This document shows, in pieces, positions 2,630-64,000 of a stretch of 64,000 bases of DNA; the stretch's first letter is position 1, and every line of letters starts with the position of its first letter. Made by a program: the position numbers and the translations under genes. The notes under the pieces were generated by a model. That model was given only the letters and a program-made list of their open reading frames with translations. It searched no databases and was not told the DNA's origin. The DNA lies in the IMG/VR virus record IMGVR_UViG_3300031251_000001, positions 150,230 through 214,229 of that record; one strand, given 5' to 3'.

Positions 2630-2941
2630 CTAGGCCATCAAGCTGGGCAAAATCTTCAGAGTGCGAATGAGGCCACGTCGCATGACTGCTCCACCGCCGT
2701 CCCGGATCTCCAGTTGGATCTTGTAGTCTCCCGGAGTCGGGAAGGGGTTGTAGATGGTGAGGAAGTCAGCGGAACTGACCGAACCGGACACCTGGAGGCC
2801 ATTGATCACCACGATATCGACGTTAACGTCCGGTGACACAACGACCAGCTTGGCTGAGTAACCAGGCGTCACCCAGTCCAGCTTGATCCTGACGAAGCGG
2901 ATTCGACGACCACGTTCACCAGCGTAAATCGGTTGTGCCAT
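2630..2941 (-). CDS. putative virion structural protein (small beta-rich)
   Basis: Last gene of the structural cluster; AAGGAG RBS. Confidence 0.5.
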   Translation of the reverse strand: MAQPIYAGERGRRIRFVRIKLDWVTPGYSAKLVVVSPDVNVDIVVINGLQVSGSVSSADFLTIYNPFPTPGDYKIQLEIRDGGGAVMRRGLIRTLKILPSLMA

Positions 2942-2951
2942 CGCTCACTCC

Positions 2952-4145
2952 TTACTCGTCCACCAGGGTGTAAAGCTCATCCATGCCGGCGTCGAGTATG
3001 GTGATCTCTTTGTCTTGATCGCTACCCATCCCGGCGTCCATTTCGTACATCTCGTCCATGTAATAATTACTGATGTAGTACCCCCATTCGATGGGTTCTT
3101 CTATCTCCACTGTATCATCGTCCACCCGCACGGTGACCCAGTTAACACTGGTGCCGGCAAGCTGAACGTGCGAAGTACCCAAGAAGAGCACCTTCGTGTG
3201 CAGGAGCCCGATGGCCTCTCCCTGCAGCTGTACCGCGCCGACGGCTGCTACCAGGTGACGATGGAACAGAAGGCTAGCCGGCTGTCCAGCAGCCAAAGTT
3301 GATGACACGCCGGCATAGAGTTGCCGTTGAAACAGTAACGTCGCCGCGTGTCCTGTGGCCGATACCGAGGACGCACTCAGTGAGAAGACGCGTACCTTAC
3401 CCAGCCACACTGGTAGGCCAGCAGCGATGACCTGAGAAGCACCCATGTGCAACTGGCGCGAGATGCGCATCCCCAGCGTGCCGCCGTGCAGCACAACGGA
3501 AGAGGCACCCAAACGTAGGACCTTGAGATCGACAAAGGCGAGGTCCTCACCTGCCAGAACCGTATTCTCTCCAGCCAGGTGGAAATAGCGGGTGTAGGGC
3601 ATGCGCAGCCCTTGCCCCTGAGCTGTCAGCGACGAGACACCACAATGCAGCACGCGACTATGGAAGAGGTTAGCACCCTGCCCGGTGAGTGACACAGCGC
3701 CAATACCGGCGTACAGTCGACGGCGATGGAAGAGGCCGGCACTGACGCCACTGACGGTCGCTTGACCGGTGGCCACCTTCAGTAATCGATTGTGCTTGAG
3801 GAATGCTCCTATGCCGGCCAGCGTAGTGGCGGAGACCCCCAGGGTGAGGCGTCGGTCATGGAAGAGTGAGACAGACTGGCCTGTCAGGCTGACGCTGCCA
3901 GCGGCCATCTGTAGCCGCCTGGTCAACGTGAGCGTGGTGCCGAGGCCTGCGAGCGTGACTGCGCCGGTACCGGCTAGGATCTTACGTGTGACGCTGGCGG
4001 TGACACCCTGTCCAGCGAGCTGGACGGCTCCTGTTCCGGCATAGAGATGTGACTGTTTGAGCAGATTCACGCCGTTGCCGGCAGTGACCACGCTGCCGCC
4101 TTGCAGCGGCGTGGTCTCACCAGCTAAAGCTAAAAGAAGGCCCAT
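2952..4145 (-). CDS. repetitive beta-strand structural protein (about 30-aa repeats)
   Basis: Recurring L.AG.GAV.L.GQ...L...R.L units; probable start MGLLLALAG after AAGGAG. Confidence 0.7.
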   Translation of the reverse strand: MGLLLALAGETTPLQGGSVVTAGNGVNLLKQSHLYAGTGAVQLAGQGVTASVTRKILAGTGAVTLAGLGTTLTLTRRLQMAAGSVSLTGQSVSLFHDRRLTLGVSATTLAGIGAFLKHNRLLKVATGQATVSGVSAGLFHRRRLYAGIGAVSLTGQGANLFHSRVLHCGVSSLTAQGQGLRMPYTRYFHLAGENTVLAGEDLAFVDLKVLRLGASSVVLHGGTLGMRISRQLHMGASQVIAAGLPVWLGKVRVFSLSASSVSATGHAATLLFQRQLYAGVSSTLAAGQPASLLFHRHLVAAVGAVQLQGEAIGLLHTKVLFLGTSHVQLAGTSVNWVTVRVDDDTVEIEEPIEWGYYISNYYMDEMYEMDAGMGSDQDKEITILDAGMDELYTLVDE

Positions 4146-4155
4146 GCCGGCTCCT

Positions 4156-5655
4156 TTACATGAAGAAGCCGCGAACCGCCACTGAACCTTGGATGACCTG
4201 TGAGGCAGTAGCGGTGCCAACCGGCATACGCAGGATGACCGCGAAGTTCTTACCGGCGAAGGTGGGTATGGGGGTCTCGAAGGAGACGTTGATGTCAGGA
4301 GCATTGGCACCGATAGCGGCACCGACAGGAAGCTGGTGCGTGCCGAATGCAGTACGCAGGTGAGCACCCGTCGACAAATTGGCCGAGGCACCGTTATGGC
4401 CCAGGCCCCAGAACAGAAGGCTGGGTGTGGTGGCCACGATGGCACCGGTATTCCAGCAGGTGGCATAAACGCCGGTACACATGAAGGTGTAGGGCGAGGG
4501 CACGGTGAAGCCAAAGAGCACGTAATCGGTGGCGGCACCGGCAACCGCAGCGAAGGAGTAGAGACCGTCCTTGGTGGTGTAACCGGCGACGGTGTTGGAC
4601 AGGGTCGCATTGGCGGGAGCGGCGGAATTGGCGAAGGTCGACGTCTGGGTGTAAGCGGTCGGGCTCATGTGCCCACCCTGACCCAGGAGCGGCATGTGGT
4701 AGGCCAACGGCATGTTGATGGCCCAGTCCTTGCAGCTGACGACCACGTCACCGATGACTGTCTGCTGTGCTGTCAGGGTTGCTGAGGCATTGCAGTTGCG
4801 GAAGAAGACCGGGATGTGGGTGACGGCGTTGAACTTGGCGGCAGTGTAAGGTACACGATAAGTAGCGTAGGCAATGATTGCCCCGGTGGTGGCATCCTGA
4901 ATCTGGAAGTCAGCCCGGTCGTCGCTCATGATGATGTCAAAGACATAGAAGCGACCGTTCACCAGCAAGTTGCCGGCGGCACCTGAGCTGTTATCCGCTG
5001 GACCATTGAGAGTAAGAGCGATTTCTGTTTCACCGACTGAATTGAAATTAACGACGGCGACCACTGTCTGATTGCTCTTCTCGCGGAAGTAAGCACCGTT
5101 GGGAATGGCACCCGTGCTGATGGCCGTCGCCGGGATACCAAAGCCAAAGTCGGTCTGACCGTTGGCGTAACTGGTGATCTGCAGACGAGCACGGAAATGC
5201 AGTGGCCCGAAAGCGATCTTGGAAAACATCTGCTGACTGACGATCATGGCACCCGTGGCGGTGGTCAGCGTCGAGTTGGCGTTCAGCGTGATGCCGGTAG
5301 CAGCCTGCGTGACAGTCTGCGTTGTAACCGTGTTGGTCCAGATCTGGGAGTTCTGGGTAGCGCCTTCGATGTTGTCACGGAAGACGATGTTCTCCAGGGC
5401 CTGCCTGGAATTACCCAGGCGATCGACGCGGAGCGAAGCCAACCATGACTCGTCGGCATAACCGCCGATGGGAATCGCGATCGGCCCGCTGGCTCCGACC
5501 GGGGAGCGACTGACACGGGGAATAGGCCGACCCAGGTGGTCTACCAGGATGGAGTCGAGCAGGCCGTACGTGCTGCTCTGCTGGAAGTCAGCCCCGGCGT
5601 TGTTGGGGCGTCCTGCCATCTGCAGATTACCGGCACCGACTTGTACTCCGAACAT
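4156..5655 (-). CDS. putative tail/tail-fibre-associated protein
   Basis: 499 aa, Thr/Ala/Gly- and beta-rich; AGGAG RBS; structural-gene context. Confidence 0.6.
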   Translation of the reverse strand: MFGVQVGAGNLQMAGRPNNAGADFQQSSTYGLLDSILVDHLGRPIPRVSRSPVGASGPIAIPIGGYADESWLASLRVDRLGNSRQALENIVFRDNIEGATQNSQIWTNTVTTQTVTQAATGITLNANSTLTTATGAMIVSQQMFSKIAFGPLHFRARLQITSYANGQTDFGFGIPATAISTGAIPNGAYFREKSNQTVVAVVNFNSVGETEIALTLNGPADNSSGAAGNLLVNGRFYVFDIIMSDDRADFQIQDATTGAIIAYATYRVPYTAAKFNAVTHIPVFFRNCNASATLTAQQTVIGDVVVSCKDWAINMPLAYHMPLLGQGGHMSPTAYTQTSTFANSAAPANATLSNTVAGYTTKDGLYSFAAVAGAATDYVLFGFTVPSPYTFMCTGVYATCWNTGAIVATTPSLLFWGLGHNGASANLSTGAHLRTAFGTHQLPVGAAIGANAPDINVSFETPIPTFAGKNFAVILRMPVGTATASQVIQGSVAVRGFFM

Positions 5656-5664
5656 GCGTGACTC

Positions 5665-5955
5665 CTATGCCCAGGCCCAGGCGACGTTCCACACTCCCGT
5701 CAGAGGAATCGTCGAAATTGCTTGAATGGTGAAGCCGTTGTTGGCGATCACCGAGGATCGGGGTACCCAGACGGTCAGGGCACCTTCCGATTTGAGGACA
5801 GCATGCCCGTCCTCGGTATTGTTGCTTGTTGCCTTGGGGGCGATCCAGCAGTCCACACGGCTGTCAGCCGCGATGTTCTGACCGGTGATGGCCAGGCTCG
5901 CGGCCTGCGTGGGGGATGACCCAAAATCGATAAGTGCTTCACCGCTGGCGGCCAT
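5665..5955 (-). CDS. putative virion structural protein
   Basis: Within the structural cluster. Confidence 0.55.
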   Translation of the reverse strand: MAASGEALIDFGSSPTQAASLAITGQNIAADSRVDCWIAPKATSNNTEDGHAVLKSEGALTVWVPRSSVIANNGFTIQAISTIPLTGVWNVAWAWA

Positions 5956-5963
5956 AAGGTCCC

Positions 5964-6401
5964 TTAGCTGGCGGTGACAGTGAGAACGCCATTGGTATCG
6001 TCAAAATCGAGGGAGAGGTTTTCCCCGTCGTTGAGGGTCTGTGACGATCCATAATCCCAGAAGCCGCACAAGATCTTGTTGGTCGAGGTGTCGTCGTAGA
6101 GGACAGCGTACCGAAACGGTCCGATAGCTCCGCCCGACGCGGTCAGCAGGTAATCGGCCAGCTTGGTGGTCCAGACGTTGGACGCCAGAGCTGCAGCCGA
6201 AATGGTCATCGCCGGCCCACCAGCGGAGTAACCAAACCCGGCCGAGATGTCGGTGAGATCCGATTTCTGGGTATGCGTAGCAGGGTTGGGTGCTGAGTTC
6301 GTCAGCATTACCTTGAAGGTATCAGCGCTCAGATCGAGCTGCTTGGTTGCCAGAGCCTGGGCGTAGTAGTTGAACTTCTGGAACGACTTGGGGGTGGGCA
6401 T
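5964..6401 (-). CDS. conserved phage tail-associated protein
   Basis: DLSADTFKVML...GYSAGG...GPFRYAVLYDDT...DYGSS pattern typical of phage tail-region proteins. Confidence 0.7.
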   Translation of the reverse strand: MPTPKSFQKFNYYAQALATKQLDLSADTFKVMLTNSAPNPATHTQKSDLTDISAGFGYSAGGPAMTISAAALASNVWTTKLADYLLTASGGAIGPFRYAVLYDDTSTNKILCGFWDYGSSQTLNDGENLSLDFDDTNGVLTVTAS

Positions 6402-6625
6402 GCTGGCTTCCTGCCGTATTAGGTGGTCTTGTCAGCAGGGACAAACTCACCCGCGTACACAGCCTGGTGACCAGACCTGATGTAGCGGCTTCCTGGATGA
6501 TCCTTATCCAGGATTGCACCTTCGGGGGACACGATGATGTCAGCGGTATCCGCAGGCCATTCGACCTGAAGACCGCCATGTGTTCCACCTGACAGCACAA
6601 TAGTCATAACCTGCCTCCAGTTCTG

Positions 6626-6634
6626 ATAGTAACA
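6626..6634 (-). promoter_or_regulatory. extended -10 element TGTTACTAT
   Basis: TGnTAnnnT just upstream of a GGAGG RBS. Confidence 0.4.
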
Positions 6635-6960
6635 CAAACGGCAGGCTAGTTGTCTAGCCTGCCGCACTTACCTGACCCTGCTCTTTATTTTGTGACGATC
6701 TGCTTATCGCCATCGAGCTTCTTTTTGATGGCGTCGGTGAGACTGGCCACCTTGCCGTTGGCCCACAACGCGATCGACTTGAGGGTGCTCTCAGCATCTT
6801 CCAGGGACATGCCGACAATGTGATTCTCGGTCGAGGTGACCACAGAATCAACGGCCCGATGCGATAACTCTTTGTTGGCTTCCGACACGTTCGCGAGCGG
6901 AGCCTTGTGCGATGGTTCCATTACTGGGACCTCCTTGGTTAGGTGATGGCGATTGTAGCG

Positions 6961-8243: not shown

Positions 8244-8259
8244 CAAAATACGTATTTTG
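8244..8259. promoter_or_regulatory. 16-bp palindrome CAAAATACGTATTTTG, copy 1
   Basis: Exact, intergenic. Confidence 0.85.
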
Positions 8260-14955: not shown

Positions 14956-14990
14956 AAAACGAAAGACCCCACGATGCAGGCCGTGGGGTC
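14956..14990 (-). terminator. intrinsic terminator
   Basis: GACCCCACG-loop-CGTGGGGTC followed by TTTCGTTTT. Confidence 0.75.
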
Positions 14991-15005
14991 AAAATACGTA
15001 TTTTG
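14990..15005. promoter_or_regulatory. 16-bp palindrome, copy 2
   Basis: Exact; abuts the terminator. Confidence 0.85.
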
Positions 15006-21935: not shown

Positions 21936-21951
21936 CAAAATACGTATTTTG
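21936..21951. promoter_or_regulatory. 16-bp palindrome, copy 3
   Basis: Exact, intergenic. Confidence 0.85.
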
Positions 21952-27859: not shown

Positions 27860-28423
27860 CGACTGGAAGGAGGCCCGACGTGGTAGAGGCTTGGCTAGTA
27901 CTCCTCGACTCACCCACGTCAGGCCATGGATCTATTTAGCGGTGGCATCCGCCAGGGCTTGGAGGACTTGATTGACGAAGTCAGGGGAGCTGGTATTGAA
28001 GTCGAGAGCCAAGAGCTGACAGCGTGGATCACGCAGCAGCGAGGCCAGGGCAACGAGGTCAGACAGGTCTATAGTGACGTTGGCTTTCATGGGATAACAA
28101 CGTCCTCGGGGCAACTGCCGGCACCGCAGCTATCCTCACCACTTGCCGGGTTGGGAACCACGGCGGCGTGAACGTAAGGCTCGGAGAACGACTGCGTCTC
28201 CAGAGCCTTGGTGAGCATGTCACGAATGGCTACAAGACCCTCACGGGTGGTAGCCAAGCGGAACCTGTGCTGAAGGTTGCCGAAAGAGCTGGTCTCGATC
28301 TCTAGCGTTGGGCCGTAGGCATCGAAGACGCGAATGGTGGCACCACTATTACCCACGTGCAGGTAGATCTCGGTGGCGGGCGTTTCGACTTTTTTACTGT
28401 CTTGGGACATGGTGACCTCTAAG

Positions 28424-28495
28424 AGCCGGGGGCAAGATTTGAACTTACGACCTCGTGGTTATGAGCCACGCGAGCTACCACTGCTCCACCCCGGT
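28424..28495 (-). tRNA. tRNA-Met(CAT), initiator-like, no encoded CCA
   Basis: ACCGGGG TG GAGC AGTGGTA GCTC G CGTGG CTCATAA CCACG AGGTC GTAAG TTCAAAT CTTGC CCCCGGC T folds as a cloverleaf. Confidence 0.93.
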
Positions 28496-30446: not shown

Positions 30447-30462
30447 CAAAATACGTATTTTG
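30447..30462. promoter_or_regulatory. 16-bp palindrome, copy 4
   Basis: Exact; adjacent to the GGAGG RBS of the gene starting at 30437. Confidence 0.85.
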
Positions 30463-32003: not shown

Positions 32004-32084
32004 GTTTGTCCTTGGGATGATCCCGTTTGACTTGGCCAGGAGTAACCCCGGCCGTCGACCACATACCAGTACCCGGTCGTGGTG
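32004..32084 (-). CRISPR. putative minimal-repeat array A (ACGRCCGGG, 25-nt period)
   Basis: ACGACCGGG and ACGGCCGGG 25 nt apart, plus a degenerate AAACGGG about 25 nt further. Confidence 0.45.
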
Positions 32085-32150
32085 CGTTGTGCCGCCGAGT
32101 ACCCACCAGGAGCACCCTAAGCAGCGGTAGGCCTACCGGTGGCCCCGTGA
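32085..32150 (-). ncRNA. 66-nt structured scaffold element, copy A
   Basis: TCACGGGGCCACCGGTAGGCCTACCGCTGCTTAGGGTGCTCCTGGTGGGTACTCGGCGGCACAACG. Confidence 0.8.
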
Positions 32151-32421
32151 ACTGACTACTTGCTCTGGATGTTACAGCGGGCATCCCAGAACAGCAAGAT
32201 GACGATGGTGACGACCAGGCCAATGATGCCGGCCGTGCCCCAGTAATAGTCGAAGCTGGAGTCAAACCAGATCGCTGTCATGCAGAGCATGCAGGCTAGC
32301 ATGGAGAGCGTGAACGCTGCGTATTTGGCTGGTGGATCTGAAGGAATTGGCTTGTTAAAAGCATCGCCCAGCAACCTGCGTAGCTGGGCGTCCTTGTCGA
32401 AGTGAGGCATCGATAGCTCCG

Positions 32422-32874: not shown

Positions 32875-32996
32875 GACATATCTCCATTTGACCCGGTACG
32901 CTTATCCTAACCCCGGCTCGTGTTGCTTAGCCATATCTAGGTCCCCCGGTGCGGCAATTCCTTCCTTCCGGATCCAATGCAAGCCCGGCGGCGATG
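32875..32996 (-). repeat. irregular CCGG(G) array B
   Basis: CCGG at 32893, 32913, 32946, 32968, 32985; spacing irregular. Confidence 0.3.
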
Positions 32997-33062
32997 CGTT
33001 GTGCCGGCGAGCGTCCACCAGGGACGCCCTAACCAGCTGTGGGCCTACCGGTGGCCCCGTGA
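32997..33062 (-). ncRNA. 66-nt scaffold element, copy B
   Basis: TCACGGGGCCACCGGTAGGCCCACAGCTGGTTAGGGCGTCCCTGGTGGACGCTCGCCGGCACAACG. Confidence 0.8.
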
Positions 33063-33466
33063 CTTCAGTCTAACAAACGGGCGGCTGCCCATGCGGTGCT
33101 GAATGAAGAATCATGTCCTCCAGTCGGAGGTTGACGTCGTCGAGGTAGACCGGGCTAAAGCGGATGCGAGCTTCCTCTTTGGTGCCGTAGCTCGACTGGA
33201 CAGGCGGGTGCTGAGAGAGTTGCTGCTCCTGAACTCGCACCCAAGGCAAACCTCGCAGCTCATCGGGGAGCTTCTCGTAGTAAAGCCGGGAAGACCACTT
33301 CACCGGCGTCAACCACACTAGCTTGCCGTTCTCCTTCGACTCAAAGGTGGCGCCCTCGTAGACCATAAAGGTGCCACTTCGGAAGGCCATGATGGCGGTC
33401 ACCGGTCCCACGCCACATCTGATCTCGGTGGCCAACCGCATGGTGGCCACCGTACGACGGTGCGGG

Positions 33467-35903: not shown

Positions 35904-35919
35904 CAAAATACGTATTTTG
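35904..35919. promoter_or_regulatory. 16-bp palindrome, copy 5
   Basis: Exact; directly at the end of array C. Confidence 0.85.
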
Positions 35920-36079
35920 GGTTCGTGTCTCCGCCCCTGCTTCGTGCTGGTGGACTCCACCTGCTGTGACAAGCCCGACTTGACTCCCTGCTACGAGGTA
36001 GCCAGATCGGCTCACCTGTTGCGAGCATTGGCATCTCCGCCCCTGCCCGTGCGGGAAGAGCATCAACACCCTGCTCGCT
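35920..36079 (-). CRISPR. putative minimal-repeat array C ((RG)CAGG x6)
   Basis: Plus-strand cctg at 36070, 36042, 36015, 35987, 35960, 35936 (periods 28, 27, 28, 27, 24). Confidence 0.6.
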
Positions 36080-36145
36080 CGTTGTGCCAGCGACCCGCCA
36101 CCAGGGCGAACCTAACCAGCTGTAGGCCTAGCAGAGGCCCCGTGA
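36080..36145 (-). ncRNA. 66-nt scaffold element, copy C
   Basis: TCACGGGGCCTCTGCTAGGCCTACAGCTGGTTAGGTTCGCCCTGGTGGCGGGTCGCTGGCACAACG. Confidence 0.8.
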
Positions 36146-36150
36146 ATCGA

Positions 36151-39907: not shown

Positions 39908-41641
39908 TTATTCCTCGGGTTGATCAGCTGCGTCCCTCTTCTCCTTGAGGATCTTCACCATCGCCTCCAGCTGCGACAGTGTATCGGCGTCACGGTCGGC
40001 CGTCCGCAGCATGCGCTTAGTGAGAGCACGTTTAGCGTAAAGCACCGTCACCGGCAGACGAGCCATAGCCTGGCCCACCGCTGCTGGACCACGAGAACGG
40101 AAGATGTCGTGGAACTTCTCGTAGAACTCCATGCTGTGCACATGCGTCCCGGTGTCAGCGTTGTCGTGACAGTGCTCATGGGCCAGCAGATGGACCAGGC
40201 TGCTGACGCCATCGACGTCGAACTGGAGCCTTCTCAGGTAGTCCCGGCCGATAGCAATGTAGCTCTCGCCGTCCGTCCAGCCCTCGGCCACCGGGGAGCG
40301 ACCGATGCAGAGCTTACGTCGCTTCTCCCAGCTGTTGCGTTCGCGTTTGATGATCAACCAGTAGGCAACATGAGCCAGCTTGAGCCAGATCCCCTCCAGG
40401 GCGGTGAGGTTCTTCTCGGCGATCAAGTCATAGCTCTCGCTGATCGACTTGATCAGCGACTGGAGACTACAGATCTTGTAGCTGGAACCCAGGTTCATCC
40501 TGTACGATTCCTTCCCTGTCCTGATCTTCCACATGACATCAAGGAACTTACTCAACGACATGTTGAACTTGCGCAGGGTCTCCTCGGCCACCACGAACGC
40601 CAGCTTCTGCTGAAACAGCTTATCAGCCCTGCGGTCACCCAGCGGAGCACTGGTGAGGCGTTCTTTGTACTGGTAGGAACATTGAAAGAACTGCTTGATG
40701 GAATAGTGACGACCTGAGCAAGCGGTGATGATCTTGAGATCAACAGCACCCGCCGGCACCTCATCCTGAGCGATCAAGTCGATGAGGCGTTGGCGTTCGT
40801 CATCGTTCATCGACTCCCTCTTGAGGAGTTCCTTCTGGGCGATCTGGTCGACGAACGGTTTGATCTTCCGCCACACCTTGCAGGACGATTGGACGTCGTT
40901 CCTGGCGAAGTTCACCTCCAGCTGCTGACGGCTGACGATGACGCCGCCTACGCCGAAGTGAGAGCCGGCCATGTCCAGTGTGTGCACGCCCAGGTTGTAA
41001 AGAGCCAGGGTGCCGGCACCACGGGTCAGGCGGATGTAGGCCTCATCGGTGACGAAGTCCCACTTTTCTTTAGCGGGGTCGACGTTGATCTTGGTGCCGT
41101 TGTAGACAACAACACACTGGGCGTACTTGGCCCAGCTGCGGATCAACCGCTCAGTCTCGGCAAAGTCCGAGGGCTTCATCCGCTCGTAGAGCTTGATCTC
41201 GATGCGGCAGCCATCCTTCTCAGGCAGGCCACTCTTGAGGTCGTAGTCCAGACCATCGTCGGCGATGTTGACGTTCATCTCGAATGGGCCGGTACGCCAG
41301 CGGTTGCGACCATAGGAGAACATCTGCCCACGGCCCATGCGGAAGGTGCCGTAGATCTTCTTCTCTTTCTCGGTGTGGGGCTGACCGAAGGTCTCAAAGA
41401 AGTCCTCGATCTGCTTGCGTTCGGCGATGCCGATACCGTTGTCGTCGATGAGGACGCTCTCAGGGGTGACGGTGATGGAGCACTTGGTGGCTTTGGCGTC
41501 CACCGAGTTCATGACCCCTTCGAGCACGGCCTTGGCCAGAGTGCCGGCCTGCCGCTTGATAACGTCCAGGAGGAGCTTCGGGTGCATCCCGAAGCGACGG
41601 CGCTCGATGTTGTCGGTACGTGCGAGTGCGGAAACGGACAT
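39908..41641 (-). CDS. GHKL (HATPase_c/Hsp90-like) ATPase protein
   Basis: EGVMNSVDA, IDDNGIG, YGTFRMGRG, GCRIEI; HEHCH near the C-terminus. Confidence 0.85.
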   Translation of the reverse strand: MSVSALARTDNIERRRFGMHPKLLLDVIKRQAGTLAKAVLEGVMNSVDAKATKCSITVTPESVLIDDNGIGIAERKQIEDFFETFGQPHTEKEKKIYGTFRMGRGQMFSYGRNRWRTGPFEMNVNIADDGLDYDLKSGLPEKDGCRIEIKLYERMKPSDFAETERLIRSWAKYAQCVVVYNGTKINVDPAKEKWDFVTDEAYIRLTRGAGTLALYNLGVHTLDMAGSHFGVGGVIVSRQQLEVNFARNDVQSSCKVWRKIKPFVDQIAQKELLKRESMNDDERQRLIDLIAQDEVPAGAVDLKIITACSGRHYSIKQFFQCSYQYKERLTSAPLGDRRADKLFQQKLAFVVAEETLRKFNMSLSKFLDVMWKIRTGKESYRMNLGSSYKICSLQSLIKSISESYDLIAEKNLTALEGIWLKLAHVAYWLIIKRERNSWEKRRKLCIGRSPVAEGWTDGESYIAIGRDYLRRLQFDVDGVSSLVHLLAHEHCHDNADTGTHVHSMEFYEKFHDIFRSRGPAAVGQAMARLPVTVLYAKRALTKRMLRTADRDADTLSQLEAMVKILKEKRDAADQPEE

Positions 41642-52439: not shown

Positions 52440-52530
52440 GTTTCCTTCGGGGCTACGGTGTCCTGACTCGTTGATGTGCGACGAGCCTTACCTGACTCGC
52501 CGCTATTGGGAACGAACTCCCTGACAGATG
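52440..52530 (-). CRISPR. putative minimal-repeat array D (CGAGTCAGG, 29-nt period)
   Basis: Plus-strand cctgac at 52462, 52491, 52520; 20-nt spacers. Confidence 0.65.
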
Positions 52531-52596
52531 CGTTGTGCCGGCGACCACCCACCAGGAGTGCCCTGACCGGCTGTAGGCGTGTCAGACGCCCCGTGA
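52531..52596 (-). ncRNA. 66-nt scaffold element, copy D
   Basis: TCACGGGGCGTCTGACACGCCTACAGCCGGTCAGGGCACTCCTGGTGGGTGGTCGCCGGCACAACG. Confidence 0.8.
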
Positions 52597-52601
52597 ACGG
52601 A

Positions 52602-52913
52602 TTACTTGCCGTGGATCTTAGCTTCATTCATGCGAATGATCTCGTCGACGGTCATGGCACTGCGCTTGACGTTGCATTCAGCACAGGCCCAGACGAGGTT
52701 CTCACGTTCGTTGGTGCCGCCCAGGCTCAGTGGAAGGATATGTTCCACGGTTCGGCAATCGGGCGGCTGGGGGTTGGTGTTGGGCGGGTAGACCACCATG
52801 ACTTTGTCACACCAGAAGCAGAGGTCGGACTGAGGTCCTTGCTCCAGCATTTTCCGGCGTGCCTTCTGGCGTCTACCCGACTCGTTGCGCTTCCGTCTCC
52901 TCGGTGCGATCAT
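52602..52913 (-). CDS. small HNH endonuclease
   Basis: CFWC...TVEHILPLSLGGTNERENLVWACAECNVKR. Confidence 0.9.
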   Translation of the reverse strand: MIAPRRRKRNESGRRQKARRKMLEQGPQSDLCFWCDKVMVVYPPNTNPQPPDCRTVEHILPLSLGGTNERENLVWACAECNVKRSAMTVDEIIRMNEAKIHGK

Positions 52914-52938: not shown

Positions 52939-52954
52939 CAAAATACGTATTTTG
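52939..52954. promoter_or_regulatory. 16-bp palindrome, copy 6
   Basis: Exact, intergenic. Confidence 0.85.
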
Positions 52955-54344: not shown

Positions 54345-57161
54345 CTAGCGGACGGGTGCTGTCGGCTGCTGACCGGTCAGGGCCTGGTTGATCTTGGCCG
54401 GAGCTTGAGCAGCACCAGCGTTCCCGAGGAAGTTGCGGGCAGCGGTCAGGAGCCCCATGCCTGCCATGCCGGCGATGCCACCGACCATCCCGCGACCCAG
54501 GCCACGCCCGAACGAGAAGTTGGGAGCTGCGGGCCGAGTCATCGACATGTTGGTGTTGAGGTAGGAGCGGGGCCGGGGAGCGGTGGGTTGACCATCCATG
54601 AGGCCGGCACGCTTGGGGACGCCTGCAGCAGGAGCAGCAGCCTGTTGATCAGATCCACCCAGGTACGACTTCATGGCCATGCCGCCACCCAGGAGACCAG
54701 CACTGGCAGTGCCGAGGCCTGCGACATTATCCCCCACAGTCGGAGCAGTGGGCGTGGGCTGGGAACCGAAGGCACGCTGAGCCGGAGCGGGAGCACGTGG
54801 GGCACTGGGCACCGAAGCACCGACCGGCACGTGTGACATGGAGGTGGGTAGTGCCTGGGCCATCGGTGCTGCGGGTCGAGGCACGATGGTCTGCTTGCTC
54901 ATGTTCTTCATGCCACGCATCATCTGCCCTGGGGCTTTGAGGATGCCACTGAGGATGCCAGCGTGTTTGGTGACGGGCTTATCGTCTTCCTCTTCCTTCT
55001 CGTGCTTGGGCTTGCTGCTGTCGGTCAGGCGATGCAGGCCGTAACCAGCCAAACCGCCAACCAGGCCACCACCGAGCATACCTAAGCCACGGTGGTCAGA
55101 CGGCGAGGCCATCAGGCCACCCATTTCACCCAAGGTACCACCAATGCCAGTAAAGATAGCTCCGCGTGAGCCACTGTTGACCTGGCGTGAATGTTCTTTC
55201 TTGTCGCCACCTGAGTCGGTAGCACCGACCACGCCTGGATTGATGACGCCAGCTGGCCCCATCATCAAGCGACGGATGATACGTGAGCTCTTGTCTCCCT
55301 GATCAACTTCCTTCTTGTTTCGCTGCCACGAGGGCTTACCACCGACCATGTACTGGCCGAACTTGTCGCCACCACGCATACCCAGTAGCCCACCAGTGAT
55401 ACCACCGACCGAAGCACCAATGCCGGCACCGGCTTCCTCGTGACCCAGTGCACGACCAATACCAGCGCCAGTTGCAGCTCCCAACCCGAGTCCGGTGGCA
55501 CCGCCCAAGCCGGCACCGAGGAGACCGTATCCAGTACGCTGCGTACCACGCACGGCGCCTTCGTAACGGTGACCCTTGGGTGAAGTGGCAGCACCAATGA
55601 TCGCAGGTAGACTAGCGAGGCTTAACCCACCCACCCCACCAGCGATACCGCCCGCTATGGCGGGATCGATAGCCCGCTTACTCCAGCGCACCTGTCCATC
55701 CACGGCCCCCTTCTTGCCTACAGGCGGTGCGGATTCCCACGGTGCCGGCGCAATGTTAGGCTTGGGCTGAACAGGAGCAATAGGGTAGTCAGCGCCACCG
55801 CCAACCCCAGAGGGTGGCGCGAATTGCATGAGATCATTAGGGTCTTTCGGCTTGCTGAACTGTCTCTGCAGGAAGTCACCCACAGACTTCTTGGGCTGGT
55901 CCCGCACAGTGTCCTTCAGTGATTTGAAGCCACTGGGTTGTGCGGCATAGTTACCCTTGATGGTTTCAGCCGCATGATGCACACCCTCATTCACCTCAGC
56001 GTCGTTCTGTTGTTGCTTACTCGTCAAATACCTGTGCAGCAAGTAGGTAGAACCAATACCAGCAACAGCACTAAGCACAGGGAGTGAACGACGAAGCAGA
56101 CCCGGCTTCTTGGGTTGTACGTCGACGGCCAACTTGCTCCAACGCACCTGTCCATCCACGGCTACTTTGTGTGTCAACGGATTACTCCCAATGGACGAGT
56201 CGTCAGCTTCGACTTCCTCGTGGTCTTCTGGATCAGTCTTGTCTTCACTCTGATTGGCGTCATCCAGCAGCTTGTTGAGTGGATGCGTCTTGGTGTCGGG
56301 CGTCATGGTATCGAGATGTTCACCGTGCCGCAGAGGCGAAGGCGGCGGTGGTGGAGGAGGCGGCACAGGTGGTGAACCAGGAGGCGGCGGATTGCCGTCA
56401 CCAGCGAAAGGCTGAGGAGGAGGCGGGCCGGCGGGTGCTCCACCCTGCTGCGAAGGATCGGTCTGTTGCCCAGGAGGGGGCGGTTGTCCACCGGGTGCGT
56501 TCGGTGCTCCTGGGGGGCCGGCGGGGGCACCGGGGGATGGAGGAGCACCGAACGCAGGTCCAGTGGGAAGTCCAGCTGCAGCGGCCTGCTGTCCTGGGGG
56601 CAGGTCACCTGACTGCGGTGGCTGCTGAATGGGGCCGGTCGGTGAGGCAGGTTGAGCTCCGACGTCACCAGCCGGCAGCGCTGCCCTCTTGCGTCGCGAG
56701 CGTGCTTGATGTGCCTCCACCCCGATCCGCGTGATGGGAATGCCGTTCAACTGGATCGGCGTGTACCGTAAGTCTCGGGCCGTGACAACCTTTTGCACCA
56801 AGTCGGCAGCACTGTGCACCGCCTCCTGGGACGAGGCGTCAACGTCTCCTATGGAGATGGCTTGTCCCGGCTGCTCCCCGGATGTCGTGCTGTCAGGGTC
56901 AGACCCGAGCAACAGGTTGCTGGTAACCCCCGCTCGCTTGTCCCGTCTGTGGGACCAAGTCGTGCGCAGAGTGTCAATGGCTCCCGTGAGCTCGGGAGTT
57001 AACCGTGGATTAGCCATAAATGATGCTGCCTTGCTCTGGGACCGTGCGAAGCGGTTCAGCTGTTCCTTCGTGGTACGAGCGGGTTTCGCAATGGACGACA
57101 ACTGTTTGTCGGCCTCAGAGCGTACCAGGTTTGGTGCGATTTGAGCGTCTGTGGATTGCAT
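54345..57161 (-). CDS. 938-aa low-complexity Pro/Gly-rich protein with glycine-zipper segments
   Basis: Poly-Pro tract, GxxxG helices, internal repeat AVDGQVRWSK x2. Confidence 0.75.
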   Translation of the reverse strand: MQSTDAQIAPNLVRSEADKQLSSIAKPARTTKEQLNRFARSQSKAASFMANPRLTPELTGAIDTLRTTWSHRRDKRAGVTSNLLLGSDPDSTTSGEQPGQAISIGDVDASSQEAVHSAADLVQKVVTARDLRYTPIQLNGIPITRIGVEAHQARSRRKRAALPAGDVGAQPASPTGPIQQPPQSGDLPPGQQAAAAGLPTGPAFGAPPSPGAPAGPPGAPNAPGGQPPPPGQQTDPSQQGGAPAGPPPPQPFAGDGNPPPPGSPPVPPPPPPPPSPLRHGEHLDTMTPDTKTHPLNKLLDDANQSEDKTDPEDHEEVEADDSSIGSNPLTHKVAVDGQVRWSKLAVDVQPKKPGLLRRSLPVLSAVAGIGSTYLLHRYLTSKQQQNDAEVNEGVHHAAETIKGNYAAQPSGFKSLKDTVRDQPKKSVGDFLQRQFSKPKDPNDLMQFAPPSGVGGGADYPIAPVQPKPNIAPAPWESAPPVGKKGAVDGQVRWSKRAIDPAIAGGIAGGVGGLSLASLPAIIGAATSPKGHRYEGAVRGTQRTGYGLLGAGLGGATGLGLGAATGAGIGRALGHEEAGAGIGASVGGITGGLLGMRGGDKFGQYMVGGKPSWQRNKKEVDQGDKSSRIIRRLMMGPAGVINPGVVGATDSGGDKKEHSRQVNSGSRGAIFTGIGGTLGEMGGLMASPSDHRGLGMLGGGLVGGLAGYGLHRLTDSSKPKHEKEEEDDKPVTKHAGILSGILKAPGQMMRGMKNMSKQTIVPRPAAPMAQALPTSMSHVPVGASVPSAPRAPAPAQRAFGSQPTPTAPTVGDNVAGLGTASAGLLGGGMAMKSYLGGSDQQAAAPAAGVPKRAGLMDGQPTAPRPRSYLNTNMSMTRPAAPNFSFGRGLGRGMVGGIAGMAGMGLLTAARNFLGNAGAAQAPAKINQALTGQQPTAPVR

Positions 57162-57200: not shown

Positions 57201-57512
57201 TCAAAGCGAAGGCAGGCAAGCGTGGGCGACGTCGGAGGTGAAGAGCTCTCCTGGGCCGTTGCCTTCGGTGTCACGAGAAGCGTAGAGATGGACGTCGTTG
57301 TCGAGGATGATGACCAGAGGACGATTATCCCAGCGCATGTCGGTTGCCTCCTTCTTGGTCATGTACCTGACGTGCTTGATGGTGCGATCACGCAGGAGAT
57401 CAGTAGCAACAGCGGTCCAGTAGGTTTCACGCTGCTTAGCGTTGGAGAGGTCGTATTGCTTTCTGTGGTGAGTAACGATGGATGGCATGAGGTTGTTCCT
57501 GAGAGTTGACAT
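57201..57512 (-). CDS. hypothetical protein
   Basis: ASRDTEGNGPGELF motif; follows array E. Confidence 0.6.
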   Translation of the reverse strand: MSTLRNNLMPSIVTHHRKQYDLSNAKQRETYWTAVATDLLRDRTIKHVRYMTKKEATDMRWDNRPLVIILDNDVHLYASRDTEGNGPGELFTSDVAHACLPSL

Positions 57513-57642
57513 ACTGGTATTGCGTGCCCGTCACGACAGATCTGGCAAGGTGCCCGTCCGGAGGACGATACGGTACATGCCCGCCCTTGAAAGGTCGGGG
57601 CATGGACCCGTCCTCGGAGTGACGGCCAATACCGTCCCTGTT
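57513..57642 (-). CRISPR. putative minimal-repeat array E (GRCGGGCA, 26-27-nt period)
   Basis: Plus-strand cccg at 57527, 57553, 57580, 57607 and cctg at 57637. Confidence 0.6.
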
Positions 57643-57708
57643 CGTTGTGCCGACGCGTGCCCACCAGGAGCACGCTAATCAGCTGTAGGCCTGACGGAGG
57701 CCCCGTGT
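57643..57708 (-). ncRNA. 66-nt scaffold element, copy E
   Basis: ACACGGGGCCTCCGTCAGGCCTACAGCTGATTAGCGTGCTCCTGGTGGGCACGCGTCGGCACAACG. Confidence 0.8.
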
Positions 57709-58529
57709 GCTTGATTGTTAGAACCTTGGTCTAGGCAGTTCCTTTGATTCTTCCACAGTCGGCTCAGGTGTGGGTTGGTGCCGGGCCTCCAGGGCGGAAA
57801 TGCGACTTGATAGCGACTCATTCACGATCGCTTGCTCGGAGATCTTGTTCTCGATGCGGATGTGTTGAATGGTGTGAATGACCAGGTAACCCATGGCGAA
57901 CCAGAAGATGAAATCAAACATGTGTTCCTTAGTTGATACTGGGTTTACCTGCCACACGGCGTAACACCGTGGTCAGGGCCTCATTGGTGATGTCGGCTCG
58001 GTCGGGGTCAGTCACCTCGCGGCAACCATCCTCGACGATAACGATGTCATGCTCGCAATGGTCAGCGAGGAAGCGAAAGATCGGGGCAGTCTCGCCGCCA
58101 TCGCCCATGACCGAGAACTCGGCCCCGCTGATGTGCAGCAAGTAGGCCAGAGAATCCGACTCAGCCAGTACCCGACGCAGGAACTCTTCGCTCACGCGAC
58201 TGGACTGGGGCGAGTCGAGATTGCAGGTCTTGCAGCGGTAACTCATGTCGACAGACATAGTGACTCCTCACAGTTCGCCACGTGATTGCAACAGTTTGAT
58301 CATGGCGGGATGAATCCAGAACACCTTGTTGCATTGGCAGGTGATGGCGATCCGTGTACCTACGGGCAAATGGGCCAACTCGTCGTTGCCGCCACGATCA
58401 GTCTCCGCCTTGTCGATGGTAGTCATGCGGTGATCTGCCGTGCTGAGCGTACGACATAGGGAGTGCCACTGACTGCGGACATAGCCCATGAACTTGGTGT
58501 TCGATAGTGTTTCTTTCATCGAGTCTCCT

Positions 58530-58612
58530 TAATTAGCCTGTTCGCCATTTCCCATCCAGCAATCCGGTCAACTGGTCCCATCCGGATTCAGGTTATGCCA
58601 CTCCCACCCGAT
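58530..58612 (-). CRISPR. putative minimal-repeat array G (GGRTGGGA, 26-nt period)
   Basis: Plus-strand ccca at 58551, 58577, 58603; 18-nt spacers. Confidence 0.65.
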
Positions 58613-58678
58613 CGTTGTGTCAACGCCAATCCACCAGGGATGAGCTCATTGACGGTAGGCGTGATGGACGCCCCGTAG
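58613..58678 (-). ncRNA. 66-nt scaffold element, copy G
   Basis: CTACGGGGCGTCCATCACGCCTACCGTCAATGAGCTCATCCCTGGTGGATTGGCGTTGACACAACG. Confidence 0.8.
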
Positions 58679-58738
58679 CCGTGAGGCCTCATGCGGTGTA
58701 AGCTGATCGCAGGCAATAATGCCACCAGAGGACCTCGC

Positions 58739-60325
58739 ATGCTAGATCAGAAACGAGTTGTGCTACCAGGTAGCGACCGCAAACCCTTAGAGGGTGCCAC
58801 GGTTGCAGCCGGCCACCGTCATAGTGAAAGGTTTGAGGTCACCGTGCGTCTGCGACGCAAGGCACCAATCAAACCCGAAGGAGCCCAACACGAGGATGTC
58901 CTTCCCGCTGATCGCAAGTATATGACCTGTGATCAGTATCTTGCACAGCATGGTGCCAAGCAGGAAGATGTTGATTTGGTGACAGCGTTTGCCAAGTTGT
59001 ACGGTCTGACGGTAGTCGATGTCAGCCTGGCACGCCGTAGTGTGTTCTTGTCGGGTTGTACCGAGCAGTTTGAGAAGGCCTTCAGTACCACGATCGCTGA
59101 CATGGAGCACCCTGGTGGCGGTTATCGCGGCCGAACTGGTCCACTCACAATCCCCGAGAGCCTGTCAGGCATCGTGGAAGCTGTGTTGGGCATCGACAAC
59201 CGCAAGATCGCCAAGCCCCACTTCCAGATGGCTAAGAGGCTGCAGGGTGCGACACCACACGCCAGCCACTCTTCCTACAATCCCAACGATGTCGCCAAGG
59301 CGTACAACTTCCCCACCGGGGTAGATGGTACGGGACAGTGCATTGCCTTGATCGAGCTCGGTGGCGGTTATCGTCTGCCTGACATCACCGCCTACTTCAC
59401 CAAGCTGGGACTGAAGGTGCCCACCGTGAAGACCGTGCGCGTTGATGGCGGCACCAACTCACCGACCACCGCCGATGGCGCTGACGGTGAAGTGATGCTG
59501 GATATCGAAGTAGCGGCAGCAGTGGCACCAGGTGCCACCATTGTCGTCTACTTTGCTCCCAACACCGATAAGGGCTTCCTTGACGCGATCACCATGGCCG
59601 CTCACGACACGGTCAACAAGCCTTCGGTCATCTCCATCAGCTGGGGTGGACCGGAAGCACAGTGGACCGTGCAGGCTCGCGTCGCCATGGATCAGGCGTT
59701 CATCTCAGCCTCCGTGCTGGGTCTGACCATCTGTGTGGCTGGCGGCGACAATGGTTCGACCGATGGCATGACTGACGGCAAGAACCACGTGGACTTCCCC
59801 GGCTCGAGCCCACACGCTCTTTGCTGCGGCGGAACACGACTGGGAATCGGCAGCTCCGGGCAAATCAGCTCGGAATCTGTGTGGAACGATAATCCCACAC
59901 AGAGCGCCACCGGTGGCGGTATCAGTGATGCCTTCAACGTGCCGGTCTATCAGAAGTCCGCTAACATCCCTCCCTCGGCTAATCCCAACAAGAAGTCGGG
60001 ACGCGGATGTCCGGATGTGGCCGGCAATGCTGATCCTTCCTCGGGTTACAACGTCCGCGTGGACGGTGGAAACTATGTGATTGGCGGCACCAGTGCGGTT
60101 GCTCCGCTCTATGCCGGACTGGTAGCACTCTTAAACCAGAAGCTGGGACACCGTTGCGGCTACCTCCACCCGCTGCTGTATGGCAGCGTGCAGGGCAAGG
60201 GAGCCTTCAACGACATCACGTCTGGTAACAACGGTGCTTACCACGCCCAAAAGGGCTGGGATTGCTGCACAGGGCTGGGCACACCCAACGGGCAGGCCCT
60301 CTATATTGCCCTGGGCGGCAAATAG
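58739..60325 (+). CDS. S53 family peptidase (kumamolisin/sedolisin-like) with propeptide
   Basis: Triad motifs GEVMLDIE (ExxxD) and GGTSAVAP, oxyanion GDNG, SISWG, C-terminal GWDCCTGLGTP. Confidence 0.95.
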   Translation: MLDQKRVVLPGSDRKPLEGATVAAGHRHSERFEVTVRLRRKAPIKPEGAQHEDVLPADRKYMTCDQYLAQHGAKQEDVDLVTAFAKLYGLTVVDVSLARRSVFLSGCTEQFEKAFSTTIADMEHPGGGYRGRTGPLTIPESLSGIVEAVLGIDNRKIAKPHFQMAKRLQGATPHASHSSYNPNDVAKAYNFPTGVDGTGQCIALIELGGGYRLPDITAYFTKLGLKVPTVKTVRVDGGTNSPTTADGADGEVMLDIEVAAAVAPGATIVVYFAPNTDKGFLDAITMAAHDTVNKPSVISISWGGPEAQWTVQARVAMDQAFISASVLGLTICVAGGDNGSTDGMTDGKNHVDFPGSSPHALCCGGTRLGIGSSGQISSESVWNDNPTQSATGGGISDAFNVPVYQKSANIPPSANPNKKSGRGCPDVAGNADPSSGYNVRVDGGNYVIGGTSAVAPLYAGLVALLNQKLGHRCGYLHPLLYGSVQGKGAFNDITSGNNGAYHAQKGWDCCTGLGTPNGQALYIALGGK

Positions 60326-60327
60326 TC

Positions 60328-60343
60328 CAAAATACGTATTTTG
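60328..60343. promoter_or_regulatory. 16-bp palindrome, copy 7 (20 bp perfect here)
   Basis: TCCAAAATACGTATTTTGGA between convergent stop codons. Confidence 0.85.
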
Positions 60344-60349
60344 GATGGA

Positions 60350-62200
60350 TTAACTGGAAGCCAAGGCCTTCTCGGGGGCCTTGGCTTTCTTGATGCCTAA
60401 CAGCTTATCTTCCTGATCCTGTAGCTTGGCAAGCTGCTCATTACTTATCTTGAGCAGATTCCTCATCTGTTGATGGATGAGAGTGAAATGACGAGCACCA
60501 CCCGCGACAGGGCAGTCGATGTAGACGTCCTTACCCTTCTTGCCGTCGTAGCGTCTGAGCTTCTCGTGGGCGGCGTGCAGCTTCTTATTGAACTTCTGTG
60601 CCTTAACGACCAAGTTGCGGATCTTGATCACGTTATGCAGATCGTAGAGGGTGGCTGTCTCTTCGCTCAGATCGGTGTAGGCCTTGCCAGTTAAAACACA
60701 GTCATCCTCAAACCAAGAATGCCTGTCGCCTTGATCGATGAGATCGTACCAGATCAGGTAGTGGAAGACCGGGCCTTCCTCTTTGAGGTGGACGATCAGA
60801 TCCATGGGCGTGCCGTTGATGAAAGCAGCCGAATCAGGTTCCTCCTCCCTGGCCCCCAGGTAGAACGGCAAGCGATGCCCATTCCATGTGATGCTGGAAG
60901 CAGCGAGCAGGTAGACGCTGTTACCTGGTGCTGGTTTCCCTGACGGTTCGGTCACTTGGATATCCACCAGCTCTTGAGCCTTCTTGGTGTCAAGAAAGTT
61001 TCTCATGATGGGGTGCTGCGGGCCGGCGTAGAACTCCTCGGTGGTGTCAAGGAACTCCTCCCAGTTAAGCAGCGTGTTGATGAGACCATCATCTACCACT
61101 GACTGGCCACCCTGAACGTAGAGATCCATCTCCTCTTCCCTGGATTTGATACCCTCGTCCTGGACATAGTCAAAGCTGCAGTTCTCGTAGTCCTGGGAAC
61201 TGTAATGCCTCCAACCCAGGCTGCGTACCAGGGCCACGCGATGACGATTGAGCCACTGATCCAACTCCGTCATATCTTTACGTTCGTTATGAGTGAACAG
61301 CTCCGGTAGTGTCGTCATCACGGGTCGCAACCTGGCCACGTAAGCAGACCATCGCGACTTGAAGTAGTGCAATACGTAGTCACGCAGCGCTGTGAGGATC
61401 TGCTGCATGGCTGATTTGAGTTGGGGTGAGTCGATGAGGATGGAACGATCGGGGAGCTTGGGCCGGACACCCGATTCGGGATCGACAAACCAGATGAAGT
61501 TTTTCAGTTCCTCATCGATGGGCAGAGTTTTTGCCTCTTTAAGGTACTCATCTGCCTTACCGCTGCGAAGGTAACGATAGTCCCATACCGGCTCTGGATG
61601 GTTAATGAAGTAAGGACTTGACCTTAAACCCAGCAGCACACGCCCCACCGGCGTCATGAGATCTACCAGGAGATCACCATCCATGCGTTGTGTGATCAGG
61701 TTGCCGTTAAGGGTGAGGGTGAAAGGGTACAGGGCGCGAGCAGTGCTGATGGCGTGGTCCAGCTCCTTCTTCTTGCTGGTGGACAGTATCAGCTTGAGGT
61801 AGAAACCAGGAACGCCTTCTTCCTCAATAGGTTGAATGTCTTTGTCGATCCAGTTCTTGGTGTCAAACTTGACCTTCCAGTTCTTGGAGCGGACAGTCAC
61901 CTCGGTGAACAGATCAGGGTTGAGGAGGCTGAAGAAGCCCATGCCGGCAGGAGAGGTGACCTTGGTGCGATCCCAGCCGGTCTCACCGCCCTCCACGAGT
62001 AGCTGAGGATCTTCACAGCCACGACCGTCGTCCAGGATGGTCAAGACGGTACATTCGGGATCGGTGATGACCGTGACGTTCTTGGCGCCGGCACGGTAGC
62101 AGTTCTGCAGGATCTCAGCCAGGGTGGCATCGAAGCCACCAAAGAAACGAGTCAGCTCAGGCAGGATCGCCTGGCTGACGTGAGCACGAATCGTCTTCAT
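60350..62200 (-). CDS. GHKL (HATPase_c) ATPase protein
   Basis: EILQNCYRAGA, ILDDGRG, AGMGFFSL, GFYLKL. Confidence 0.85.
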   Translation of the reverse strand: MKTIRAHVSQAILPELTRFFGGFDATLAEILQNCYRAGAKNVTVITDPECTVLTILDDGRGCEDPQLLVEGGETGWDRTKVTSPAGMGFFSLLNPDLFTEVTVRSKNWKVKFDTKNWIDKDIQPIEEEGVPGFYLKLILSTSKKKELDHAISTARALYPFTLTLNGNLITQRMDGDLLVDLMTPVGRVLLGLRSSPYFINHPEPVWDYRYLRSGKADEYLKEAKTLPIDEELKNFIWFVDPESGVRPKLPDRSILIDSPQLKSAMQQILTALRDYVLHYFKSRWSAYVARLRPVMTTLPELFTHNERKDMTELDQWLNRHRVALVRSLGWRHYSSQDYENCSFDYVQDEGIKSREEEMDLYVQGGQSVVDDGLINTLLNWEEFLDTTEEFYAGPQHPIMRNFLDTKKAQELVDIQVTEPSGKPAPGNSVYLLAASSITWNGHRLPFYLGAREEEPDSAAFINGTPMDLIVHLKEEGPVFHYLIWYDLIDQGDRHSWFEDDCVLTGKAYTDLSEETATLYDLHNVIKIRNLVVKAQKFNKKLHAAHEKLRRYDGKKGKDVYIDCPVAGGARHFTLIHQQMRNLLKISNEQLAKLQDQEDKLLGIKKAKAPEKALASS

Positions 62201-63529: not shown

Positions 63530-63597
63530 AAAAACTCCTTATTGGGAAGCGAAGACTCACCCCATCACGAAGAAAGCCACTGCACTATGCAGCGGCT

Positions 63598-63663
63598 CGT
63601 TGTACCGGCGAGTGTCCACCAGGGACACCCTAACCAGTGGTAGGCGGGATGGACGCCCCTTAG
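63598..63663 (-). ncRNA. 66-nt scaffold element, copy F (directly upstream of the Cas12f-like gene)
   Basis: CTAAGGGGCGTCCATCCCGCCTACCACTGGTTAGGGTGTCCCTGGTGGACACTCGCCGGTACAACG. Confidence 0.8.
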
Positions 63664-63932
63664 TTGATTGGCTGACCTGTGGGACCGAGGATGCTGCCTG
63701 GTTTGCGGACTTCCAGTTCAGCGGGATCAGGTGGCAGCTCAGGGACATTATCGAACAGACACAGATAGCTGGTGGGATGCTTGCCATTGATCAAGGGCAG
63801 CTTGTCCAGGTCGGTTTGCAGCTGGGCTTCAGGGTTAGGTATCCGTGCGACGGTGATTTTCTGCGGGATGACGTAGCCACCCATGGTGCAGGCCTGCCAG
63901 ATGCGATCATCGTGGTCAAAGACTTGCTCCAC
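63660..63932 (-). CDS. hypothetical protein
   Basis: 90-aa ORF whose stop codon overlaps scaffold copy F. Confidence 0.5.
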   Translation of the reverse strand: MEQVFDHDDRIWQACTMGGYVIPQKITVARIPNPEAQLQTDLDKLPLINGKHPTSYLCLFDNVPELPPDPAELEVRKPGSILGPTGQPIN

Positions 63933-64000
63933 GGAGGAGTATTCATCGAGATCCTTCTGTCGTGCGTCGCAGAAGTAGTAAGCAACGACATCCCAGTAGA

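Follow-up and report, generated by a model that had tools for sequence, protein, structure and literature searches.

Repeats in the leader of a phage gene match the loop of a predicted RNA hairpin just upstream

The locus and its repeats

The sequence examined here – referred to below as the window – is a 64,000-nt stretch, positions 150,230 to 214,229 of IMG/VR record IMGVR_UViG_3300031251_000001, and forms the last 64 kb of a 214,229-bp virus contig from a rhizosphere metagenome. The two ends of the contig share the same sequence (window 63956-64000 and genome 83-130), so that the assembly is circular or terminally redundant. Genes in the region of interest run on the minus strand, and the locus lies in a gap of about 230 nt between an ORF for a 67-aa protein of unknown function (57718-57921, minus strand) and an ORF for a 95-aa protein without a family match (57201-57488, minus strand). 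The latter is followed by a 938-aa open frame (54345-57161, minus strand), which has no Pfam or PHROG match and no homologue among 5.8 billion proteins, in IMG/VR or by megablast; the gene caller calls only its C-terminal 653 aa, leaving about 0.9 kb uncalled after the 95-aa gene.

Read on the minus strand, the gap holds five copies of (G/U)GACGG(G) between 57527 and 57637, in the 5' leader of the 95-aa gene: GGACGGT at 57637-57631 (site 1), GGACGGG at 57613-57607 (site 2), GGGCGGG at 57586-57580 (site 3), GGACGGG at 57559-57553 (site 4) and TGACGGG at 57533-57527 (site 5), spaced 24, 27, 27 and 26 nt apart. The preliminary description, made from the sequence alone, had listed this stretch as Array E, a series of GRCGGGCA repeats at 26-27 nt, and that observation is confirmed. 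Exact GRCGGGCA occurs 11 times on both strands of the window, three of them here, and in 300 first-order Markov simulations of the window no 70-nt stretch held three copies, while six simulations reached two. The intervening sequences are indeed unique: identity between units is 0.64-1.0 at only six positions and about 0.25 elsewhere.

Three details nonetheless need correction. The first unit is GGGACGGT, which contains the same GACGG core, whereas the AACAGGG previously proposed is shifted a few bases upstream of it. The ATG at 57512-57510, said to follow the array without a clear SD, does lack one but is probably not the start codon, as the gene caller starts the gene at the ATG at 57488-57486, in frame 24 nt further downstream, which has an SD-like AGGA (57497-57500) 8 nt upstream. 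Finally, ACCAG is present in the last segment, as described, but it occurs 5 times in the 1166 nt of the ten leaders discussed below against 2.2 expected, which is not significant.

A conserved two-hairpin RNA upstream of the array

The array turns out to be the downstream half of a larger element. The first 68 nt of the gap (57643-57710, minus strand), which begin 8 nt after the TAA stop of the 67-aa gene, are repeated elsewhere in the genome, and we refer to this conserved unit as the scaffold. A regular-expression scan and a covariance model built from the alignment (model R1) find exactly ten copies at 78-94 bits (93.5 bits for the copy discussed here), all on the coding strand, with the next hit at 11 bits. 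Seven lie in the window, with the first C of the CCTGGTGG loop motif at 63623, 58638, 57668, 52556, 36105, 33022 and 32110, and three lie outside it, at genome positions 147049, 122646 and 5123. Given the shared contig ends, the copies at genome 213852 and 5123 are neighbours, and 8 of the 10 copies lie in one 37-kb arc. Seven of the eight copies checked start 6-11 nt after, or overlapping, the stop codon of the preceding gene, whereas the copy at 58638 lies in a divergent intergenic region.

In the consensus fold, a 5' flank is followed by HP1 (57687-57703), a 5-bp stem (GGGCC/GGCCU) closing a 7-nt loop, UCCGUCA, at 57698-57692; by three unpaired bases; by HP2 (57649-57683), a 14-bp stem with a 2-nt bulge and an invariant loop C-CUGGU-G (loop at 57667-57663); and by an invariant single-stranded tail, ACAACG (57643-57648). 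RNAalifold predicts 19 pairs, 10 of them with compensatory changes, nine of which fall in HP2. Of all cells, 97.9% are paired, against 81.9% in shuffles and 36-48% when the partners are slid. There are 43 G-U pairs on the sense strand, which would be 47 mismatches on the other strand, so that the structure belongs to the sense RNA. As no relatives were found outside this genome, all covariation comes from ten paralogues, whose common descent inflates the counts.

Rfam 15 offers no counterpart: a scan of the window at gathering score found only a tRNA – a tRNA-Met (CAU) gene lies at 28423-28495, minus strand – and a scan of 57400-57800 at E up to 10 gave no C4 or related hit. Pattern scans of IMG/VR, of JGI metagenome contigs and of GTDB prokaryote genomes left, after scoring with model R1, only the window's own contig; these scans required an exact pattern, so that diverged relatives could have been missed. 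A blastn search of the scaffold against deposited phages gave only chance hits. The phage itself encodes a 1674-aa protein (genome 102635-107659, outside the window, minus strand; 1636-6660 of the stretch labelled L174) that carries an RNA polymerase Rpb2 domain 6 and aligns over 85% of its length, at about 30% identity, to the 'RNA polymerase subunit beta' of Salmonella phage Arash and to Vibrio phages D181, D148 and D69. It looks like a fused beta/beta'-like phage polymerase, and the genomes of these nearest polymerase-bearing phages lack the scaffold.

Complementarity between the HP1 loop and the leader sites

The HP1 loop is the one variable single-stranded part of the scaffold, with seven different sequences across the ten copies, and in every locus the repeated word in the downstream leader is the reverse complement of loop positions 14-18, often extended by a G-U pair at position 13 or a U-A pair at position 19. 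The loop UCCGUCA of Array E is thus matched by GACGG(G), UCUGACA by GUCAGG, UCUGCUA by AGCAGG, ACCGGUA by (A/G)CCGGG, ACCGCAA by (U/A)GCGG, UCCGACA by GUCGG and UCCAUC(A/C) by GAUGGG. Within Array E, site 5 is the best match to the loop, with six Watson-Crick pairs plus one G-U, and site 3 includes one G-U pair in the duplex.

The matrix of reverse-complemented loop 5-mers against leaders is diagonal, with 23 own-locus hits against 1.83 +/- 1.35 (maximum 10) in 20000 shuffles and a mean of 1.0 (maximum 5) when loops are reassigned among loci. There are no hits in the 300 nt upstream of the scaffolds and background levels in the ORFs. Four of the five loop positions in the register co-vary with the sites. 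Each duplex is only 5-7 bp, however, and duplex energies rule out full orthogonality of the loops: with G-U pairs allowed, they cross-react with several foreign leaders, so that specificity is partial. Since only the six-nucleotide core is conserved between the units of an array, whereas the spacers are at random identity, selection acts on the loop-complementary core alone.

In 9 of 10 loci – counting a 4-bp match at genome 147049 – the first site lies 9-12 nt after the start of the ACAACG tail (11 nt in Array E), which is the geometry of an H-type pseudoknot. The exception is the locus at 63623, where a terminator-like hairpin takes that place and the site follows it. Across all arrays the spacing averages 26.2 nt (sd 4.5, n = 24), although such regularity could be a relic of tandem duplication rather than a functional constraint. 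It counts against firm conclusions that in minimum-energy folds several sites are buried in local hairpins, including sites 2 and 3 of Array E in a predicted long hairpin at 57561-57615, and a second copy of the loop sequence, CCGUCA at 57620-57625, can sequester site 1 in a small local hairpin (reported on the plus strand).

The other loci of the window, all on the minus strand, follow the same arrangement. At 63561-63665 the scaffold (loop UCCAUCC) is followed by a terminator-like hairpin with a U-tract (63570-63596) and a single site, UGAUGGG (63561-63567). At 58551-58680 the scaffold (58613-58680; loop UCCAUCA) precedes three sites (GGGUGGG, then GGAUGGG twice; all within 58551-58609) spaced 26 and 26 nt, and at 52462-52598 the scaffold (52531-52598; loop UCUGACA) precedes three GUCAGG sites spaced 29 and 29 nt. 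The locus at 35936-36147 has the loop UCUGCUA and six (A/G)GCAGG-type sites spaced 24-28 nt, while two loci share the loop ACCGGUA: that at 32892-33064, with four (A/G)CCGGG sites, and that at 32022-32152, with three sites (ACCGGG, GCCGGG and AACGGG), which lies before a PAP2 phosphatase gene. The loci at 58638 and 63623 form a reciprocal best match, as the GGAUGGG sites of the former are the perfect complement of the loop of the latter, and the single UGAUGGG site of the latter is the perfect complement of the loop of the former. Comparison with the DNA contigs of three sequencing runs revealed no variants inside any array.

Genomic surroundings

The proteins encoded downstream of the ten loci – PAP2, ThyX and unknowns – are unrelated to one another, so that there is no shared regulated function. 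An HNH endonuclease gene (52602-52913, minus strand) lies directly upstream of the scaffold at 52531-52598. A sedolisin-type protease gene with a Pro-kumamolisin activation domain (58691-60325, plus strand), the only plus-strand gene in its stretch, has its start codon 10 nt from the 5' edge of the scaffold at 58613-58680 on the other strand. Two large proteins (60350-62200 and 39908-41641, both minus strand) carry a GHKL (HATPase_c_3) ATPase domain, as seen in MORC-like and conflict-system proteins.

No sigma-70-like promoter was found in the array, nor any minus-strand terminator-like site in 57300-58900, and HP2 is followed by ACAACG rather than by U residues, unlike an intrinsic terminator. 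The scaffold at genome 5123 is the only copy with recognisable host-type signals directly before it, namely a sigma-70-like promoter (TTGTCA, a 16-nt spacer, TAAGAT) and a strong terminator hairpin with a U-tract at genome 5166-5260, outside the window. A perfect 16-bp palindrome, CAAAATACGTATTTTG, occurs 22 times in the genome – at window 8244-8259, 14990-15005, 21936-21951, 30447-30462, 35904-35919, 52939-52954 and 60328-60343, with 15 more copies outside the window – almost always in intergenic positions 10-25 nt before an SD and start codon, sometimes directly after a terminator hairpin. AT-rich in a genome of 57% GC, it is a candidate promoter for the phage's own polymerase, or an operator, and two scaffold loci carry it between the array and the SD.

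Interpretation

The analysis itself establishes the conserved two-hairpin RNA after the stop codon of the preceding gene, the complementarity of its first loop to five sites about 26 nt apart in the next leader, the recurrence of this arrangement at ten loci with seven loop sequences and matching sites, the position of the first site relative to the tail and the confinement of selection to the cores. What the element does with these features is our inference. We favour, with a probability of about 0.55, a self-addressed RNA-RNA pairing module, previously undescribed, that controls the downstream gene. In this view, the HP1 loop pairs in the transcript with the nearest site to close an H-type pseudoknot, with a 5-bp stem, a 1-nt loop 1, 5-7 bp in stem 2 and HP2 looped out, while the further sites are alternative docking places for the same loop, which may come from the same molecule or from scaffold RNAs released from other transcripts. 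A common factor would read the invariant CUGGU loop and ACAACG tail, although no candidate binding protein was identified. The outcome would be control of the downstream cistron through premature termination, cleavage or stability, or access to the ribosome site; as the sites end 5-40 nt before the SD and do not cover it, simple occlusion of the ribosome site seems less likely than termination, cleavage or stability. None of the three sequencing runs listed is RNA, so that transcription through the element, processing and pairing are all unproven. Action in trans is hinted at by two anecdotal observations: the terminator-like hairpin after one scaffold, which would release it as a separate small RNA, and the reciprocal best match between two loci.

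The interpretation offered in the preliminary description is partly supported. It was right that this is one of several arrays, each tied to a conserved upstream scaffold, and that it lies in cis before a gene. Its proposed link – ACCAG in the last segment being complementary to the CUGGU loop of the long hairpin – has no statistical support, and covariation could not be applied to it because that loop is invariant; the real link is to the variable loop of the other hairpin. Processing or protein binding at the repeats, whose absence had been named in advance as what would count against the proposal, was not measured. A CRISPR-like reading, with processed guide units, finds no support.

Of the alternatives, the least remote – though still unlikely – is a purely structural element acting only in cis, in which the scaffold and its first site form a pseudoknot marking an intercistronic processing or stability point, such as an exonuclease block or an RNase entry site, and the extra sites are spare partners that raise the fraction of folded molecules. 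The fixed first site, the two loci that would be complete with a single site, the position of scaffolds 6-11 nt after a stop codon inside operons and the stable GC-rich HP2, a plausible exonuclease block, all fit this view, but it explains neither why up to six sites are kept under selection while the spacers drift freely nor why one scaffold is followed by a terminator-like hairpin in place of a first site. Less likely still, the scaffold might bind the transcribing polymerase, possibly the phage's own multisubunit enzyme, and make it resistant to termination, or the reverse, with the repeated sites keeping the nascent RNA tethered to it. The two adjacent hairpins of about 60 nt, with invariant loop and tail, resemble the put RNA (putL and putR) of HK022, and the polymerase-like protein and the scaffold directly before a terminator-like hairpin would suit such a role, whereas the lack of any sequence or model match to a known antitermination RNA, and of loop-matched downstream repeats in put-type elements, speaks against it; polymerase behaviour was not assayed.

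We consider the remaining readings very unlikely. A guide array, with the scaffold as a tracr-like handle and the 18-20-nt spacers guiding a nuclease or repressor, is formally similar, the scoutRNA of Cas12c/d uses only 3-5 nt of complementarity, and host targets cannot be excluded because the host genome is unknown. Yet the core is only 6-7 nt, the period is 24-27 nt, each locus has a different repeat, Tandem Repeats Finder reports nothing here, and the spacers have no significant match elsewhere in the phage genome. Family searches found no RT, TnpB-type domain, IS110-type recombinase or RNase III, Pfam gave no Cas domain in the 26 ORFs scanned (23 of them in the window), and PHROGs gave none in the window ORFs scanned. 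Iterons, operators or parts of a promoter or origin at the DNA level, phased at 2.5 helical turns, would account for the regular spacing of about 26 bp and the location in front of a gene, and on the plus strand the HP1 loop is an inverted copy of the repeat; but seven site sequences, which follow the RNA loop, would require seven proteins, the associated structure is strand-specific and rich in G-U pairs, and no sigma-70-like promoter was found. A neutral remnant of tandem duplications of the scaffold's 3' end, the least likely of all, could explain the regular spacing, the longer stretches shared by some units (for example at genome 147049 and window 36105) and the recurrence of parts of the tail inside arrays, although neutral decay would erase cores and spacers alike, whereas the cores are conserved and track the loop of their own locus. 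Translation of the array was rejected because the ATG-initiated frames across it (55 aa on the minus strand, 66 aa on the plus strand) do not keep the repeats in one frame, and a tRNA-like reading of HP1, suggested by its 5-bp stem and 7-nt loop, because the invariant second loop base is C rather than U and pairing uses 5-7 loop bases.

Comparison with known systems

In concept, the element is closest to the c4 antisense RNA of P1/P7 (Rfam C4 family) and the CI RNA of satellite phage P4, small structured RNAs encoded in the leader of a phage operon, whose exposed sequence pairs with repeated sites in the same transcript – seqA and seqC in P4, the sites before icd/ant in P1 – and thereby shuts off the downstream genes (PMC4825925; PMC8198154). 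Specificity in these systems is set by matched changes in the RNA and its sites. The complementarity of the HP1 loop to 1-6 sites in its own leader, in all ten loci, shares this logic, but the element is not a member of those families: it does not match their covariance models, its fold differs, its complementarity is only 5-7 nt with up to six periodic sites, and it occurs in ten copies with seven specificities in one apparently lytic jumbo phage rather than as one immunity locus. Excision of the scaffold from the primary transcript, by RNase P as in those systems, and action in trans are unproven here.

The translational operator of phage T4 gene 32 has a similar layout, with a 5' pseudoknot followed by a leader carrying several copies of a short motif that runs towards the ribosome site (PMC535899), but there the motif (UUAAA/UAAA) is read by a protein, gp32, and does not pair with the pseudoknot, whereas here it differs from locus to locus and is complementary to the hairpin loop. 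As in classical H-type pseudoknots in leaders and riboswitches, the loop of a 5-bp hairpin is complementary to a downstream stretch at a constrained distance, with support from covariation, but here the 3' strand is present in up to six evenly spaced copies, and a 35-nt hairpin with invariant loop and tail lies in loop 3. The put RNA of HK022 likewise has two adjacent stem-loops of about 60-70 nt in the early transcripts of a phage, acts in cis and occurs in more than one copy per genome, but it has no variable loop with matched downstream repeats, there is no sequence similarity, and the function of the element described here is untested. ToxI arrays of type III toxin-antitoxin systems and CRISPR arrays are also tandem short repeats in an untranslated region before a gene in phage or defence contexts, yet those repeats are 28-46 nt and nearly identical over their whole length (34-46 nt in ToxI-like arrays, which precede a ToxN/AbiQ-type endoribonuclease gene); here only 6-7 nt are conserved, no toxin or cas gene is nearby, and the downstream 95-aa and 938-aa proteins have no family match. 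The element can thus be described as a leader RNA with self-complementary target sites, or pseudoknot, whose architecture we cannot match to any described family.

Implications

A more far-reaching possibility, unlikely but not excluded, is that the scaffold is the RNA part of a new kind of programmable ribonucleoprotein, in which a factor bound to the invariant CUGGU loop and ACAACG tail uses the exchangeable 7-nt loop as a very short guide. Specificity would then come from multivalent reading of 3-6 sites spaced about 26 nt apart, so that each of about seven scaffold types coats and controls only its own leader, or the matching non-template DNA strand – a natural family of partly orthogonal, self-addressed riboregulators in one phage genome.

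If the pairing is real, this phage carries ten copies of one RNA device in which a single 7-nt loop can be rewritten and the target sites follow, which would be a natural set of partly orthogonal RNA-RNA switches. It would add a new class of structured RNA, without an Rfam match or a relative in the collections searched, and would show that short multivalent pairing, with several 5-7-bp contacts at a fixed pitch, is used in nature to address an mRNA, offering compact parts for synthetic gene control. For phage biology, it would expose a layer of post-transcriptional or elongation control in an orphan jumbo phage that carries its own RNA polymerase.
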